Source of the DNA: Entomortierella parvispora E1425
Taxonomy: Eukaryota > Fungi > Mortierellomycota
Reading direction: 5' to 3'
Length of the DNA: 64,000 nucleotides
Assembly: GCA_020891255.1 (NCBI GenBank)
Contig: BQFW01000011.1
Location: 558,001 to 622,000 of the forward strand
In this document: positions 7,806-15,472 of the stretch, in pieces
Layout of the letters: each line of letters begins with the position of its first letter
How positions within the stretch are numbered: the first letter of the stretch is position 1
Made by a program: the position numbers and the translations under genes
The notes under the pieces: model-generated
What the model was told of the DNA's origin: nothing
Seen by the model: only the letters and a program-made list of their open reading frames with translations
Databases searched by the model: none

Positions 7806-10255
7806 ATGACCACCAAGCAGCTCGACATGTCCTTTGATGCCATGAACCTCCGTGACAATGGTCCTGGCTCGCCCATGGACCACCATCAGCAACACCAGCA
7901 CCAGCTGCAGAATCAGCAGCACCAGTACCAGCAGCAGCAGCAGCCTCAGCACCAGAGGCGCTACTCCCAGTATGGCTCCGAGCGCGGACCGACTAGCCCC
8001 CTGACTCGTAAAAACACGGGTGGCCACCCCGGCAGCGGCAATGTATCGCAGCGTAACAGCATGGGCATGAATGGGATGGTCATGGGTGTAATGAACGGCG
8101 GTATGAACGGCAGTCAGAGCCTGAGCGGAAAACGACCTCCTAACCGCCTCTCTGTTGCCAACATGGTACGTACACGAAGAGAAGGCAGATATAGATCCTC
8201 TTTTTTTTATAGAGTGGACGGTGGCTGGCTGGCGGAGACCACCCACCAGATCTAAGGTGGTTCTGGCTCTCTATTGTTTTCGTTTCATTCACAAAAGGGG
8301 TCCAGAGAGTGAGGAAGGGGAGGGTGTAGGGGAGGACCGGGTCCTCTCAGGGCAAACATGGTCTGCATACGCTTTGCCTTTTGCTTCACTGCTCTGCTCT
8401 GCTCAGCGCTATGTAGCCCTTATATCTCCTCGCAAACACCCCACGCGCCCATGCCCACGCCCACGCACGCACGCGCACATGGCACATCTGGGCCGGGGCA
8501 CTGTTGGTCAACAGAAAAAAAGATGGAATGAGAGCCTTCCTTGTTTCCTTGACACTCCACGCATGTTCCAAAAGAGGGTCGACATCAGAACACCAAGCAC
8601 AGGGTGCCTCTTCGGCCAAGGATACAAGATCGGTTGATCCTGTCACCACATGCTCGCGCCATCGTTCAGCCGTGTTACTGTGCCAAGCAGCTAAGTATTC
8701 CTTCCTTCATTCACAATAGAACTGGAGTCCCCTTCAGGCGACACCTCTTCAGTCGCCTGTCTTCCAGCAAGACCCACGCCAACAACAGCAGCCTCAGTAC
8801 TATCAAACTTATGCGTACCAGCCCATGATGCAGCCTGGGCCAATGATCGGGCAGTTCCAGCCCTCACCCTATCAACAGCAGCCGTTGCCATTGCACCATC
8901 AATTGCAGCAGCCCATGATGCAGCCAGAGGAGGAACCGGTCGAGACCATCCCCACTGCGATTGTTATCAAAAACATTCCATTCCAGATCAAGCGAGAGTC
9001 CTTGCTTGCCATCCTCGACAACCTTGACATTCCCAAACCCTACGCGCTCAACTATCATTTTGACAATGGAGTCTTCCGTGGTCTGGCTTTTGCAAATTAC
9101 AGGACTGCAGAGGAGACCGATCTTGTTTATCAAGCCGTGAATGGACTGGATGTCCAAGGAAGGAAACTCCGAGTGGAGTTCAAAAAGGTGATGCCTGCCG
9201 CCGAACAGGAGAAGAGGGACCAGGAAAAGGCCGCTGCTGCTGCACTAGCCGCCCAGGAAGCTCTTCAGCGCCGCGAAGCTGAAATTATGGAAGTACAGCT
9301 CCAAGAGCAACAGCAGGAACGCCAGGAACGTCAGCGTGAGCTGATGGAGTTGCAGAACCGCGAGTTCGATCGCACTCGTAATAGATCCTCGGCTGCATTG
9401 TTGGAACGACGCGATTCTGGACGTAGTCTACTGGACCGCGATGAGGTTGCTGCCCTAAGCTTGAACCAATTGGACTTGAACGATGGCGAGACTCTGGCCT
9501 TTTACGACCGATTGCTCATGTTCCGAGGTGACACTACCAAGGACGACATGGTCTTTCCCGAGAACCTGAGTGCTCGCCAGCGCAGGATTTTGCACCTTAT
9601 CGCGGATAAGCTGTCTTTGCATCATTTCACGGAAGGAGAGGGCAACCTCCGAAGATTGATCATCATGAAAACCCCTCCTGCAAGCTCTGTCCTGGAATCA
9701 GCCGCACACATCTCACCCGGAACCCCAAGCAAGGTAGACACCCATGTCTTTGAGTTTTTACCCGATATTTGATCACAGCTTGCTTGTCTTTACACCAAAC
9801 TAATGCCGCCTTCGTTCGATCTGCAGCAGCGCCCAATGTCCTTTGCTGGCCGAGGCTCTCTTCGATCTGATAGCCCCATTTACAAATCCAGGACACCGCT
9901 TCCAGATATCCCCAGTGGATCTTCATCTTCTGCTGCAACGCCTTCCACCACTATCAGCACTGCAATCCACACCAACCTTGGTGGAGGTGCAGGACTCGGA
10001 GGTGGCAGCAGTGTCACCAGCAACTACACGTACACCTCCACAACCATGTCTTCGGGATCCGCTTCGCCCACCCGATCTCTTTACAGACGCTCGATCGTCT
10101 TTGATGTCTCTTCCGCCTCTGGAGCAAGCGCAGCGGGAGGCAACTTGATATACCCTATTCGCCAGCCCAAAGGACCTGAGCCTGGCAAGATGTTTACAAT
10201 CCGAGATCAGAAACAACTGAGGGATGCGACCATGATTAAGCCTGCCTTCGCGTAA
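7806..10255 (+). CDS. PIN4: PIN4-like RNA-binding protein (RRM + R3H, Gln-rich), 3 exons
   Basis: The RRM 'IPTAIVIKNIPF..KRE.LL...PYALNYHFDNGVFRGLAFANY' closely resembles yeast Pin4. R3H motif 'LSARQRRILHLIADKLSLHH'; poly-Q N-terminus. Introns at about 8166-8719 and 9734-9825. Confidence 0.8.
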
Positions 10256-10837
10256 TCAGAGTGCGAAAACTACCGTAGACTGTTGGGCAGGCGATGAGCA
10301 TGTAGTTTTTGTTTGTTTTTTTTCTTGAAAAATGTCAATAAGAATTCATTTTTGTATCTATTCGGTTCGATGATGTCGTTGTTGAATAATGTTGGGCTTC
10401 GTGCCTCGTTCATCTTTCAGGACGTTGCAATCTTGAAGTTGACTCACTGGTCCATCTGTTTGAGGCAGGAGCGCCTAAACTCCGCCTATTGCCGAAGGGC
10501 GCTGTTGTTGTGGGCTCGGTGAGGTTGTCCCGAATTGCTTCGGGACGTGCAGCAGCGTCAACAGCAAAATCAGTCCAATGCGGAATAAGAAGGCGGACAG
10601 TGCTTTCCTGGTGCTCTGTGATTCACAATCTCCAATCGTCAATCGCACTCAGCTTTGGCGTGGGAACAAGCGACCAGAAGCGATTTCTTATAACGCGTCC
10701 CAATAAAAGGTCCCTCCCATCTTTTTTCGCTCTTCTTCTCTCTTTCTCTTTCTCTTTTCTTTTTCTCTTTCTTCACCCCTCCCAACCCCACTCGCTTTTC
10801 AAGTCCACCAAAACCTTTCCCACCTCCAGTAACCACT

Positions 10838-11975
10838 ATGTCCACTGACAAGATCACCTGCTTGCTGAACTGGCACGCTACGCCTTACCACCTCCCTCTC
10901 TTCTTGGCCGAGAAGCTCAACTACTTTGTTGAGGAGGGAATCAAGGTTGCGATCCTCGAGCCCAACAACCCTTCGGATGTGACCGAGATCATCGGGTCCG
11001 GAAAGGTCGATCTCGGCTGCAAGGCCATGATCCACACCATTGCCGGTAAGGCCCGTGGATTCCCCATCAAGTCTATTGCCACGCTGTTGGACGAGCCTTT
11101 TACCGGTGTCGTCTACCTGGCGTCCAAGAGCGGGATCACGACCGACTTTCAGTCCCTCCGTGGCAAACGTATCGGCTACGTGGGCGAGTTTGGCAAGATT
11201 CAACTGGACGAGTTGACCCGCCACTATGGCATGACTCCCGATGATTATTCCGCGGTCCGTGTTGGCATGAACGTCACAGGGGCCATTATCCGCGGCGACA
11301 TTGACGCCGGTATCGGTCTTGAGAACGTCCAGATGGTCGAGCTTGAGGAATGGTCGGTCCAACAGGGCCGCTCTCGCGATGACGTCCGAATGCTCCGAAT
11401 CGACGAGTTGGCCGACTTGGGATGCTGCTGCTTCTGCTCGGTGAGGAGACCTACCAATAGAGAGAGTAACACTGTTGTCGTTTGTGGATCTTTTCTCTTC
11501 TAACACGCCCCTGTCTTTTTGTTTACATCTTTGTCAGATCTTGTTCATTGGCAATGAAACCTTTATTGCACAGAACCCCGAGAAGGTGGCTGCGTTCATG
11601 AAGGCTGTGAAGCGCGGAGCTGACTTTATGTTTGCTCAGCCTGCAGCTGCCTACGAGCTCTTTGTGGAGATGAAGCCCCACATGACCAGCGAGGTGAACC
11701 GCAAGATCTACCAGCGCTCGTTCCGTTACATGTCCCGCGACCTCAAGAACGTCCAGCGCGATTGGGACAAGGTCACCAAGTACTGCAAGCGCCTCGAGAT
11801 TGTCGACGAGGGATTTGTTCAGAACATGACCAACGAGTTCTTGACCTGGCCCATGGAGCCAGAGTCGGCTCCTGGATTCATCCACCCTACCATCGATACC
11901 GGTGTCTTGGCCGATTGCTCGAGCTGCAAGCACTCGGCCTTTGCGGAAGCTTCGACCACGGTGGTCGAGGCTTAG
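10838..11975 (+). CDS. THI5: HMP-phosphate synthase THI5/NMT1, 2 exons (intron 11441-11537)
   Basis: '[20 protein letters not shown]', 'AMIHT' (substrate His), '[10 protein letters not shown]' and the 'LGCCCFCS' metal-binding motif are characteristic of the THI5/NMT1 family. Confidence 0.95.
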
Positions 11976-12068
11976 AAAGCGCGGATCCACAAGAAAACGA
12001 GAGGAGACGAAATTTTATTAGCGGTAGAGCCTTCATGAGAGGGTTTCTTTGTTTGCTATTTTGCTCAG

Positions 12069-12414
12069 GTAACGCGCGTGTTGGATGCAAGTGAGGATAC
12101 TAATATCACCCATCTCTTTTTCTTTCTGTCTTTTTCCTTTCCACTTGACTATGGTTCCTGGTTCGATATTTCCGGCTACCTCCTCCCTGGTTTCATTTTA
12201 CCCTCGGGTCGATCTCTTGTCTTGGACGGACACATTACACCATCGCCAACTCTTCCCCGCTGCCGTTTTCCACGCCTCATACTCTACTCGCCTTGACTTC
12301 CGCTCTCTGCCGGCCGCTCTGTTAAACATCCTGACCCGCCTGGGGGACGGTGATCCAAACAATACTTTGATCCATGGTTGCGCATGGCACAGTGAGACTA
12401 ATGGTCGACGCTAG
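12069..12414 (+). promoter_or_regulatory. Putative riboswitch-regulated 3'-UTR intron
   Basis: Donor CAG|GTAACG at 12069. Branch-like TACTAAT (12098-12104) and GACTAAT (12396-12402). Acceptors CAG (12390-12392) and TAG (12412-12414, at the aptamer P1/P2 junction). No AG dinucleotide between 12096 and 12390. AATAAA at 12555-12560. Confidence 0.65.
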
Positions 12415-12510
12415 GGGTGTCCCGGGGATGCGGTCAAACGTATCTCCATTGGACTGAGAAATACTCTTTGCACCTGATCAGGGTAATGCCTGCGAAGGGA
12501 AGCGTCGACC
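12403..12510 (+). ncRNA. TPP riboswitch aptamer in the THI5/NMT1 3' UTR
   Basis: Perfect 10-bp P1 (GGTCGACGCT 12403-12412 / AGCGTCGACC 12501-12510). Conserved cores GGGGTG, CTGAGA and 'CCTGATCAGGGTAATGCCTGCGAAGGGA'. P3 GTCC/GGAC, and a P3a hairpin GGGGATGCG/CGTATCTCC. It lies ~430 nt downstream of a thiamine-biosynthesis gene on the same strand. Confidence 0.95.
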
Positions 12511-12957
12511 AGTTTTGTCTTTTGTCTCTCTGTGTCTGGTCCGAATCTTTTTCAAATAAACAAAAAAAAAGCCGACCATCCGTCTGTTCTATATATCATA
12601 CACACACTTTACAGTACACGTACATGCATGCATGCTATGAGGAATTGATGACGTTACATACAGACCCGAAGGAGCAAGAAAGGAAAGCAAACAGAGCATG
12701 CGACTCTCGCGCGTTGATGTCGGTGTCGAGCACCAAAAAGAAAAGAAAAAAAAAAAAAAGAAAAAAAAGAAGACACGTCACCGCAACTACATTTGATCGC
12801 ACAAGCAGCAGTCACTCTGCCCTTTCCCTGCCTCTCTCTCTCTCTCACCCTCTCCCAGCACACACAGCCACCCAAAACAAAAGAAAGAGAAAAAAAAAGA
12901 GACAAAAGGAAAAAATATCCTTTCATTCCTCATCCACCCACACACACCACATTCACA

Positions 12958-14230
12958 ATGTAAGCAGGCGGGCCGTATTTGCCCATGATCGAGCCACGTC
13001 CCCCCGCAATGGAGGAAGGGACCATCGCCCGGGGTCATCTCCCGTTCATCCTCTCCTTGACAGCCATCCCTTCTTATTTGGACTCGACTGGGACCAGTGG
13101 ATCTAGATCTCGGTCCCTGGATCGATCTACTCTGGACAGGATAAACAAACCATCCAGAGTCGCTTGTTGTTGTTTGTCTGGATGAATCTCGGATCCATCG
13201 CCAGACCATAGAACATCACTCTGCCAACAAGATGACATCAAACTGCAGGGTTGGATAGTCATCTTTAACTCGACTTCACTATTGCGCTGGGCGTACCTCT
13301 TTATTTATATATTCACGCCAGGAAGAGAGTGAAGGTCAAGAGCCAAGGAGTATCCTTGCCAGCAATCGGGACACACCATCATGAGGCCAATACACAACGG
13401 ACCGGCAACAGCTTCATCAACAGCAGGCAGACTGGCGAGCGATAGACTCAGGAACCGACATTCTCCCTCTCTCTTTTCTTCTTTGCGTTGGTCAGGACAG
13501 TTCGCATCCTGGGTCCCTGAAAAAAAACAAAAGAAACTCATCAATGTCGACCTGCCTTTTCTTTTTATTGCAAACGACGCATACCATAGGGCTGATATCG
13601 AGAACAAGACCGCTTCCATCGAGGAGATCCACTCTGACGTTGAGTCTGATGTTGAGGCCCAGACCTCTTCCCGCGTCCAGTCCCGTGGCGAGATCAAGGC
13701 CCGCAAGGCCCTCTCCAAGTTGGGTCTCGAGAAGGTCAAGGATATCACCCGTGTGACCATCCGCCGCTCCGGTCAGCCCATCTTGGCCATCTCCCAGCCC
13801 GATGTCTTCAAGTCCAAGATCTCCGATACCTACATTGTCTTCGGTGAGGGTCAGGCCGAGGATGCCAACAGCTTGCAGTCCCAGCTCCAGGCTGCCCAGG
13901 ATGTCCTCAAGGATGCCGGTGAGCCCTCTGCTGCCGTCGATGCCGCTGAGGCCGCTGCCGATGAGGAGGATGGTGAGGAGGTTGATGAGACCGGTGTTGA
14001 TGCCAACGACATTGAGTTGGTCATTGCCCAGGCCAACGTCAGCCGCGCCAAGGCCGTCAAGGCCTTGAAGAACAACGACAACGACATCGTTAACGCCATC
14101 ATGGTGAGTTGATTTCTTTGCTTTTTTTTTTCTGTCATCGAGAGGAATTGGTTTGCAAGTCTCCTTGGGAAATGGTCTCTAATGTTGTCAACTCTTTCTT
14201 TTCAATGTCTAATAGGAGCTCACTATGTAA
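12958..14230 (+). CDS. EGD2: Nascent polypeptide-associated complex subunit alpha, 3 exons; start codon split AT|G by intron 12960-13589
   Basis: NAC domain '[20 protein letters not shown]...PDVFKS...YIVFGE' and UBA-like C-terminus '[32 protein letters not shown]|ELTM*'. The split start is rebuilt from ACAAT|GTAAGC and CATAG|GGCTGAT. Confidence 0.88.
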
Positions 14231-15472
14231 ATCATCCTCCAACTCTGACCCTTCTCCGCTCTCCATAATTGTCCAACCAACTCTGTCTGTCGCTTGACTC
14301 TTTTCTTGACAAATAAAATATCAAAAGCATTTTTTGTTTGCAATTCTACACCTCTGTTGTCTTGCACTTGCCCACGCGCGCTCAATGTTTTCCTTTGGTA
14401 GGTGGAGGCAGACGTTCCTCCTAGGCTAATGCAGGTGTGAAAGAACGCTCTCATCTTCCTGCTGGATAACGCCACACTGACTTGTCGACTTTGTTGGCTC
14501 GGTTTCTTTGAATTCCGGGGATAGCAATGGATAACTGATCTCTTTTCGCGATGAAGCTGCCAAGCCCGGGATCCCACCCGAACATCGCATCGCGCCCTGC
14601 TGAGGCGCAAGGGGCAAGGGATAGATGCTAGATCAGGAGCTAGCAGTTTAACATCGCGATTTAGATGCCAAGCGCGGGTTCTGGATCCGGATGCATGACT
14701 CTAGAATCCTTCTGCAGGATGGGGGCGATTGTCTACATTTGCCGTTTGTTTTTCACAGCACGCGTGCATTCTTTCCTTGTCCATCCTGTGATATGTTGGC
14801 TGGTCTACATGAATTTTTTCAGATTGAGCTCAACAACGAGTGCGATTCCGCTTTCACTTTATCTTTATTTTCATGCTTACCATCAACTGCAGGGTTCAAC
14901 ATCACCAAAGGGTCGATTCAATGTGCTCGACGCAAACCTCATGGGCTTGAGGGTGCAGAATAGCTTACTGTCCTGGCTTTTGGAAAATGGTAGCGCCTAT
15001 TTTTGCCCTTGTCATGCAACGTCCAAAGGGACCGAAGGAAAGAGGAGGAGTGAACACAGCATGGAGGCCAAAAGGAGAGATCCATGAGAACTCGAACATG
15101 TCTCCTGGGAATGGGACTGATAGGTTATAGGGATCTGCTGAGGGGCAAAGCCTAGGAGGAAACGATGGTCAAGAAAAGGTGGCGTATTAGAGGCGACAAT
15201 CAGAGAGCCTCAGGCTTGGCCAGGGATGAATGCCTTTCTTGGAGCTCATTCTACTTCAATTTGCCCGCAGCAGCTCCCAGCAGACCTAGAGTTTCTCCCT
15301 TGGCGTGGTAACACAAAACTCTTGGCACTTTCTTCTGACCCTCCGCCCTTAACGGTAGTTCGTCCCTGCCTCAGCGCTTGATTTCCTGAAGGTTAAAAGA
15401 GCGAGGCCCAAACAGTTCATTTCCCCTTTCTTCAAAAAGTTCCCACCAACGTCCTCCTCACATAATTTAGTC

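Follow-up and report, generated by a model that had tools for sequence, protein, structure and literature searches.

Eukaryotic riboswitch mechanisms are known from few systems: in Ascomycota and green algae the aptamers reside in introns that are internal or belong to the 5' untranslated region (UTR), and in plants the aptamer resides in the 3' UTR of THIC. In the known riboswitches of eukaryotes that bind thiamine pyrophosphate (TPP), the P4/P5 arm is the switching element. Here we describe a TPP aptamer located past the stop codon of NMT1/THI5, the gene whose product makes the pyrimidine half of thiamine, in a 64-kb stretch of Entomortierella parvispora E1425 DNA (contig BQFW01000011.1, positions 558,001 to 622,000). 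This whole stretch is called the window, and coordinates are those of its + strand throughout. A functional TPP riboswitch in the NMT1/THI5 3' UTR, real and conserved, is very strongly favoured by the data presented below. The fuller statement, that this riboswitch exerts TPP feedback on the maturation of the last exon, has in our judgement an even chance of being correct.

The regulated intron of plant THIC contains the site of mRNA processing, upstream of the aptamer (Wachter 2007 and Bocobza 2007, summarised in PMC10226581 and PMC3597705). In Neurospora crassa NMT1, the aptamer is in a 5'-UTR intron, upstream open reading frames (ORFs) are involved, and P4/P5 masks a 5' splice site (Cheah 2007, summarised in PMC3597705 and PMC5997356). 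TPP aptamers have also been predicted in diatoms and marine algae, in the 3' UTRs of thiamine-related genes, some of them with NMT1-domain genes; the diatom elements were unresponsive to thiamine, and the NMT1-domain proteins of the algae probably serve in salvage, as ThiY does (PMC9544697, citing McRose 2014).

Two fungal surveys, Mukherjee 2018 and ACS Omega 2024, both record NMT1-associated aptamers in Mucorales (PMC5882874, PMC11683625). In the first, the Mucor circinelloides NMT1 aptamer is classified as 'Intron, Type III', the supplement coordinates place it 47–162 nt from the 3' end of the gene model, and a 3' UTR is named only for Postia placenta eIF5B (PMC5882874). In the second, the Mucor and Actinomucor NMT1 aptamers are given as '5' UTR, Type I' (PMC11683625). 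Neither survey describes a 3'-UTR NMT1 riboswitch, an intron next to it or its adjacency to a poly(A) signal. An earlier note on this DNA, made from the sequence alone, had advised consulting such surveys for 3'-UTR cases; the Mucorales NMT1 aptamers are filed there as intron or 5' UTR, not as 3' UTR. No description of a fungal 3'-UTR NMT1 riboswitch was found in the literature searched, the coverage of which did not extend to Moldovan 2018, and the same search returned no riboswitch paper for Mortierella or other early-diverging fungi beyond a one-line mention.

The earlier note had recognised a canonical TPP aptamer downstream of the THI5 stop, followed closely by an AATAAA, and both features were confirmed. 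Scoring against Rfam RF00059, which that note had recommended, gave a match at 12403–12517 on the + strand that covers the full model (64.9 bits, E 1.8e-10, model positions 1–105 of 105) and exceeds the gathering score of 54.3 bits. It starts 428 nt past the NMT1/THI5 stop, on the coding strand, and is the sole Rfam match in the 64-kb window. A permissive scan of positions 9000–14500 (E up to 1) gave no second TPP match, hence no 5' copy of the element. The covariance-model alignment contains all P1–P5 helices of the three-way junction, with both the pyrimidine sensor (CUGAGA) and the pyrophosphate sensor (ACCUGAUC..GGGUAAUGCCUGCGAAGGGA), and the fold of the aptamer has a z-score of −4.8 relative to shuffles. 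The protein encoded by exon 1 shares 92–97% identity with its NMT1 counterparts in Actinomortierella, Podila, Mortierella, Linnemannia and Lobosporangium, which places the organism in the Mortierellaceae. The features of the locus are listed below; the RNA contig mentioned there is that of a relative, and L011 is a genomic contig from a relative 84% identical to the window.

10838–11440, + strand: NMT1/THI5 exon 1, 201 codons (Pfam PF09084, E 3.4e-54)
11441–11537, + strand: coding-region intron, GT..AG, 97 nt, absent from the RNA contig
11538–11975, + strand: NMT1/THI5 exon 2, 145 codons and stop codon TAG at 11973–11975 (C-terminal part of PF09084 at 11538–11972)
11976–12023, + strand: opening 48 nt of the 3' UTR, retained in the mRNA (covered by the RNA contig up to its joint)
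12024–12392, + strand: 3'-UTR intron, 369 nt, with donor GTAGAG at 12024–12029 and acceptor CAG at 12390–12392 (RNA contig)
12069–12074, + strand: second candidate donor, GTAACG, 93 nt past the stop (from sequence; unused in the RNA contig)
12096–12390, + strand: AG-free pyrimidine-rich tract, 295 nt (from composition)
12099–12104, + strand: branch-point-like ACTAAT, 30 nt past the donor at 12069 and 75 nt past the donor at 12024
12386–12398, + strand: 5' strand of an outer helix, P0, which holds the acceptor CAG 12390–12392 and the following AG 12395–12396
12402–12411 with 12502–12511, + strand: P1 helix, with TAG 12412–12414 at the P1/P2 junction
12403–12517, + strand: TPP aptamer (Rfam RF00059)
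12524–12537, + strand: 3' strand of P0, which pairs with 12386–12398 (95–100% identity to L011)
12555–12560, + strand: poly(A) signal AATAAA, 44 nt past the P1 3' strand

One public RNA run overlapped the stretch (share 0.07), and a contig from it was aligned over 10600–13000. It is a 1153-nt metatranscriptome contig from a relative, about 91% identical in coding sequence and differing from the window by six positions in 155 nt over the aptamer. The coding intron is gone from this contig (joint 11439/11537, 97 nt skipped; a cut shifted one place rightward fits equally), which then runs 48 nt past the stop, jumps to 12393, includes the whole aptamer and ends at 12546, ahead of the AATAAA. Six letters left unplaced by the aligner match 12017–12022, so that the joint is 12023/12393, and the 369 nt skipped start with GTAGAG and end with CAG in the window, as expected of a canonical GT..AG intron. 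The genomic contig L011, from a comparably close relative, retains the equivalent of 12024–12392; the skipped stretch is therefore an intron and not a deletion. In this RNA contig from a close relative, the whole aptamer is in the last exon of the spliced NMT1 mRNA. The placement proposed in the earlier note, in the NMT1/THI5 3' UTR and not in a 5' intron, is borne out by this link between coding sequence and aptamer, and so is a 3'-UTR intron tied to the aptamer, since the 3' end of the intron abuts it. That note had also considered that THI5 transcripts might end before 12403; the contig of the relative reaches 12546.

The splice sites used are not those put forward previously. The donor used in the RNA contig is GTAGAG 12024, 48 nt past the stop, and the acceptor is CAG 12390–12392, 10 nt before P1. 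The GTAACG donor, 93 nt past the stop, is present as described, and so is the TAG/GGGTG (12412–12418) at the P1/P2 junction to which a 3' splice-site role had been assigned, but the contig uses neither. TAG/GGGTG belongs to the Rfam consensus and was found in 12 of the 13 aligned loci (the window and 11 others); being part of the aptamer consensus, its presence is not evidence of a splice site. According to the model of the earlier note, TPP would induce splicing from 12069 to TAG 12412–12414, the resulting junction 93 nt past the stop would trigger nonsense-mediated decay (NMD), and the 12023/12393 contig would be the productive low-TPP isoform. Both sites are indeed present in the sequence, other Mortierellaceae have their single predicted donor at the position aligned with 12069, an ACTAAT stands at 12397–12402, 10 nt before the TAG, and a weak 6-bp match can be drawn from the sequence between TCAGGT at the donor and ACCTGA in the aptamer. 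We nevertheless consider this model quite unlikely, as the predicted isoform is unseen in the sole transcript, the TAG is accounted for by the aptamer consensus, the ACTAAT at 12397–12402 is not conserved, the region of the 12069 donor is only 65% conserved relative to L011, compared with 95% for the 12024 region, donor–aptamer pairing is mid-field among UTR windows, and most relatives have one donor, 0–54 nt past the stop. Exon-junction-dependent decay obeys a rule of about 50–55 nt. Because donor distances are at or below this value (48 nt for the observed isoform, 0–54 nt in relatives), the argument for NMD dependent on the exon junction complex is weak for the isoform observed. A minor, TPP-induced isoform that joins 12069 to the TAG and then undergoes NMD is possible.

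The 3' UTRs of orthologues, which the earlier note had proposed to check, were analysed in NMT1 loci of twelve named fungi and on three metagenome contigs, all scanned with Rfam. The placement recurs: of the 14 other NMT1 loci, 12 have an aptamer on the coding strand past the stop, 10 of them above the Rfam threshold. The taxa concerned are Mortierellaceae, Mucorales, Umbelopsis, Basidiobolus and a chytrid, from three fungal phyla.

Lobosporangium, Linnemannia, M. alpina, Podila, Gamsiella, two metagenome relatives and Mucor saturninus: aptamer after the stop, coding strand, 57.5–64.2 bits
Basidiobolus: aptamer after the stop, coding strand, 59.6 bits
Rhizoclosmatium, a chytrid: aptamer after the stop, coding strand, 62.3 bits
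Umbelopsis: aptamer after the stop, coding strand, 52.9 bits, below the Rfam threshold
Rhizopus arrhizus: aptamer after the stop, coding strand, 43.2 bits, below the Rfam threshold
Saitoella (Ascomycota): no aptamer
L013, a distant intron-less metagenome homologue: 5' type, aptamer upstream of the gene
Actinomortierella wolfii: no canonical aptamer

No TPP match was found in the upstream sequence (up to 4 kb) of the 12 orthologues retrieved through their proteins. The ligand-contacting motifs are invariant in 13 loci of three phyla, as are CTGAGA and most of P4/P5. Pairs in P1, P4 and P5 are preserved across loci, both sides having changed in five pairs and P1 carrying compensatory changes, and P3 varies freely in length and sequence among the 13 loci, as expected. 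RNAalifold run on a MAFFT alignment gave P1, P4 and P5 only, owing to the unequal lengths of P3 and to misalignment of the 5' half of the chytrid sequence; the Rfam model alignments were used in its place. Compared with L011, identity is 85–100% at 12340–12555 and 90–95% at 11980–12059, versus 50–75% in the middle of the intron. The 5' arrangement of L013 consists of a TPP aptamer of 43.6 bits at L013:1083–1164, upstream of an NMT1 homologue with 62% identity. The conserved block 11980–12059, made of the first 48 nt of the 3' UTR, the donor used and the next 35 nt, is closer to L011 than the coding sequence is; no significant local fold was found in it, and no significant pairing with the aptamer or its flanks.

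Each lineage has its own genes downstream of NMT1, often in the opposite orientation, and since these neighbours vary the aptamer goes with NMT1. In Mucor saturninus and Rhizopus arrhizus it lies 153 nt and 92 nt past the stop, respectively, with no + strand gene nearby (L008:5255–5390 and L009:5183–5315; the next genes are on the other strand). These observations bear on the idea that the aptamer is a relic, or part of another transcript such as the 5' UTR of NAC-alpha. The next + strand gene after the aptamer does encode NAC-alpha (Pfam NAC + UBA), about 450 nt on, and A. wolfii shows that the element can decay; a relic or a foreign leader is nonetheless extremely improbable given the varying neighbours, the invariance of ligand-contacting positions across three phyla and the RNA contig, which carries the aptamer together with the NMT1 coding sequence and stops short of the AATAAA, a separate contig starting at 12948. 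A role as NAC-alpha 5' leader was rejected on the basis of the neighbours and of this contig.

The 3'-UTR intron has a recurrent anatomy. In all 11 Mucoromycota loci, a donor-like GT leaves 0–54 nt past the stop (the donors of relatives are predicted); that of Mucor directly follows the stop (TGA/GTAAGT). ACTAAY or ACTCAY with a pyrimidine tract lies about 30–75 nt past the donor in most loci, and was seen in L002–L006, L008 and L011. An AG-exclusion zone is the mark of a distant branch point. The tract at 12096–12390 contains no AG, versus 8.1 expected, and 11 GA (AG-free shuffles, 0.0002); in eight Mortierellaceae loci, tracts of 128–295 nt contain no AG, versus about 42 expected, and 46 GA. 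The first AG past the tract is 11–28 nt before the TAG of the aptamer in all 11 Mucoromycota loci. It follows from the AG-free tract that the only AGs within reach of a distant branch point lie at the edge of the aptamer.

In the window, this first AG is base-paired within P0, outside P1. The P0 duplex (12386–12398/12524–12537) has a predicted energy of −26.8 kcal/mol, compared with −13.3 ± 3.2 in shuffles, none of 300 being as good. An equivalent of P0, formed by other sequences, is present in the minimum-energy folds of M. alpina, Gamsiella, Linnemannia, Umbelopsis, L012, Rhizopus and Lobosporangium, and not in that of Podila. Pairing is stronger between cognate P0 flanks than between flanks exchanged among species (permutation 0.005, driven by four lineages).

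On the other side of the aptamer, AATAAA is found 1–52 nt past P1 in 12 of the 13 loci, for a background of about 5% per locus (P about 4e-15). In 11 of the 13 loci, no AATAAA or ATTAAA was found between the stop and the aptamer, which led us to reject a poly(A) signal within the intron. A common layout, stop, aptamer, AAUAAA, is thereby shared by Mortierellomycotina, Mucoromycotina, Basidiobolus and a chytrid, and by this layout the last exon is little more than the aptamer, flanked by an acceptor and a poly(A) signal.

The proposal that accommodates this arrangement is TPP feedback on maturation of the last exon. The regulated step would be use of the 3' splice site of the last intron, coupled to 3'-end formation, a suggestion drawn from sequence to which we give slightly less than an even chance. 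AGs within reach of the distant branch point would occur only within or beside the closing helices P0 and P1. On binding TPP the aptamer would be locked, and either the acceptor would be held in P0/P1 or a last exon made almost entirely of aptamer would go unrecognised. The last intron would then stay, or cleavage and polyadenylation at the adjacent AAUAAA would fail, yielding less mature NMT1 mRNA. Without TPP, the acceptor CAG 12390–12392 would be used and the mRNA would end just past the aptamer, as in the RNA contig.

Pairing of the aptamer with the splice site or with the intron was searched for by sliding 20-nt windows along each 3' UTR against the aptamer. Donor windows were mid-field in 9 of 11 loci; the Mucor donor ranked first and the Rhizopus donor 13 of 87. 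Whole-region pairing z-scores were near 0, and matches to P4/P5 were accounted for by pyrimidine-rich composition. The intron was also examined for a conserved complement of the invariant GCGAAGGGAAG strand; candidates picked out by eye were no better than shuffles of the pyrimidine-rich tract, and the idea was rejected.

Several results weigh against feedback on last-exon maturation through the acceptor. Across the 3' UTRs of the 11 loci, no complementarity of the 5' splice site to P4/P5 was found that was both significant and conserved. The chief weakness is twofold: P1 (10 bp, −19 kcal/mol) and P0 seem stable even when no ligand is bound, and no significant complement of P4/P5 was found. 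P0 is not significant individually in Podila, Lobosporangium, Mucor and Rhizopus. The limits of the AG-free zone were set after viewing the data, and the G-poor tracts of Mucorales are not significant. The transcript evidence is a single RNA contig, which is an assembly, from a relative, of one isoform. A. wolfii (L001) has no Rfam TPP hit after NMT1 and has apparently lost the canonical aptamer. Finally, splicing is not a universal mechanism: an intron would not fit in the chytrid or in Basidiobolus, where the aptamers are 43 and 25 nt past the stop, respectively, with AATAAA 1–2 nt past P1.

Because these two loci keep the adjacency of aptamer and AAUAAA, direct control of cleavage and polyadenylation is a serious rival. 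TPP would alter the presentation of the poly(A) signal or of upstream elements, causing read-through and degradation, and the intron would be a later addition in Mucoromycota. The proximity of AATAAA to P1 in nearly all loci agrees with this scheme, as does Lobosporangium, in which the 3' strand of P0 includes the AATAAA. It leaves unexplained, however, why the tract is AG-free up to the aptamer with an acceptor 11–28 nt before the TAG; no complementarity was seen between the aptamer and the AATAAA region, and we know of no natural riboswitch that acts directly on a poly(A) site. As the full explanation we regard it as unlikely, though direct polyadenylation control may be the older mechanism.

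Compared with plant THIC, the NMT1 locus shares an aptamer in the 3' UTR of a gene of the pyrimidine branch of thiamine synthesis, a 3'-UTR intron that ends at the 5' edge of the aptamer and, probably, an output linked to 3'-end formation. The plant-THIC-like architecture announced in the earlier note thus holds for the 3'-UTR location and for an intron that runs up to the aptamer, and fails for the acceptor, which is outside the aptamer, and for the poly(A) signal, which is past the aptamer and not within the intron. In THIC, Wachter in 2007 is said to have placed the 3' splice site of the regulated intron within the aptamer, whereas here the acceptor seen, in one isoform only, is 10 nt before P1. 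The gene family is also different (NMT1/THI5, not THIC), pairing of P4/P5 with the 5' splice site found no clear support in the fungal loci, although the Mucor donor ranked first, and the combination of a distant branch point, an AG-free tract and an outer helix P0 has no counterpart in the plant descriptions consulted.

A further difference is that the whole fungal aptamer is kept in the mature mRNA, unlike in the productive THIC transcript. Retention would suit an aptamer that acts on the finished cytoplasmic mRNA, through stability, translation or localisation, splicing and polyadenylation being constitutive. We hold this to be improbable, a shade more so than NMD induced by splicing to the TAG, since such an action requires neither an AG-free tract nor an acceptor and a poly(A) signal that abut the aptamer, and we know of no precedent for a cytoplasmic 3'-UTR riboswitch.

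With Neurospora NMT1, the locus has in common the gene family, the aptamer class and the involvement of splicing, and in the clade of the window also the presence of two candidate donors (12024 and 12069). It differs in that the aptamer is past the stop and downstream of the intron, which makes a logic based on upstream ORFs impossible. No intron architecture shared with the algal 3'-UTR aptamers is known, and the text consulted does not state on which side of NMT1-domain genes these lie (PMC9544697).

A wider reading can be advanced only tentatively, and we think it rather less likely than feedback at the E. parvispora locus itself. TPP riboswitches of non-Dikarya fungi would be mostly in the 3' UTR and would use an undescribed platform, in which TPP gates definition of the last exon, acting jointly on removal of the last intron and on cleavage and polyadenylation. 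On this platform, the aptamer would be about the whole of the last exon, the closing helices would hold the reachable AGs, and the poly(A) signal would directly follow. An aptamer on the 3' side, as also in plants and algae, would be the older arrangement among eukaryotes, the intron type found in the 5' UTR of Ascomycota would have been derived from it, and published Mucorales tables that give '5' UTR' would be in error. A conserved 3'-UTR riboswitch on a different thiamine gene in chytrids, Basidiobolus and Mucoromycota would mean that metabolite-sensing control of 3' ends is not a plant peculiarity. It would offer a second, independent system for crosstalk between aptamer, splicing and polyadenylation, in culturable and transformable fungi (Mucor, Mortierella alpina), and would correct the filing of Mucorales elements, which some surveys propose as antifungal targets. 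The AG-free tract with its distant branch point would also make a clean natural case for the study of 3' splice-site choice.

Several minor observations concern the loci compared. In A. wolfii, a decayed aptamer from which CTGAGA and P4/P5 are gone occupies the position of the aptamer of relatives (L001:5425–5490). About 400 nt on (L001:5830–5960), there is a TPP-like element whose P4/P5 arm has received an insertion, a GGATCC...GGATCC hairpin of 57 nt; an AATAAA comes after the element. In Basidiobolus, the 23 nt from the stop to P1 (L010:5214–5236) include a near-copy of the P1 5' strand (GTGGTAAT versus TTGGTAAC), which could pair with the P1 3' strand as an alternative helix.

In the window, long A-rich and CT-rich runs precede the NAC-alpha gene (12730–12960; 13381–14112). 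The ATG at 12959 is adjoined by a donor-like GTAAGC, and the NAC-alpha start codon may sit at the end of an exon. Lastly, a 109-codon ORF that starts with ATG (12085–12414) covers the AG-free tract and stops at the TAG of the aptamer; rather than a gene, it most likely reflects the depletion of purines and of AG.

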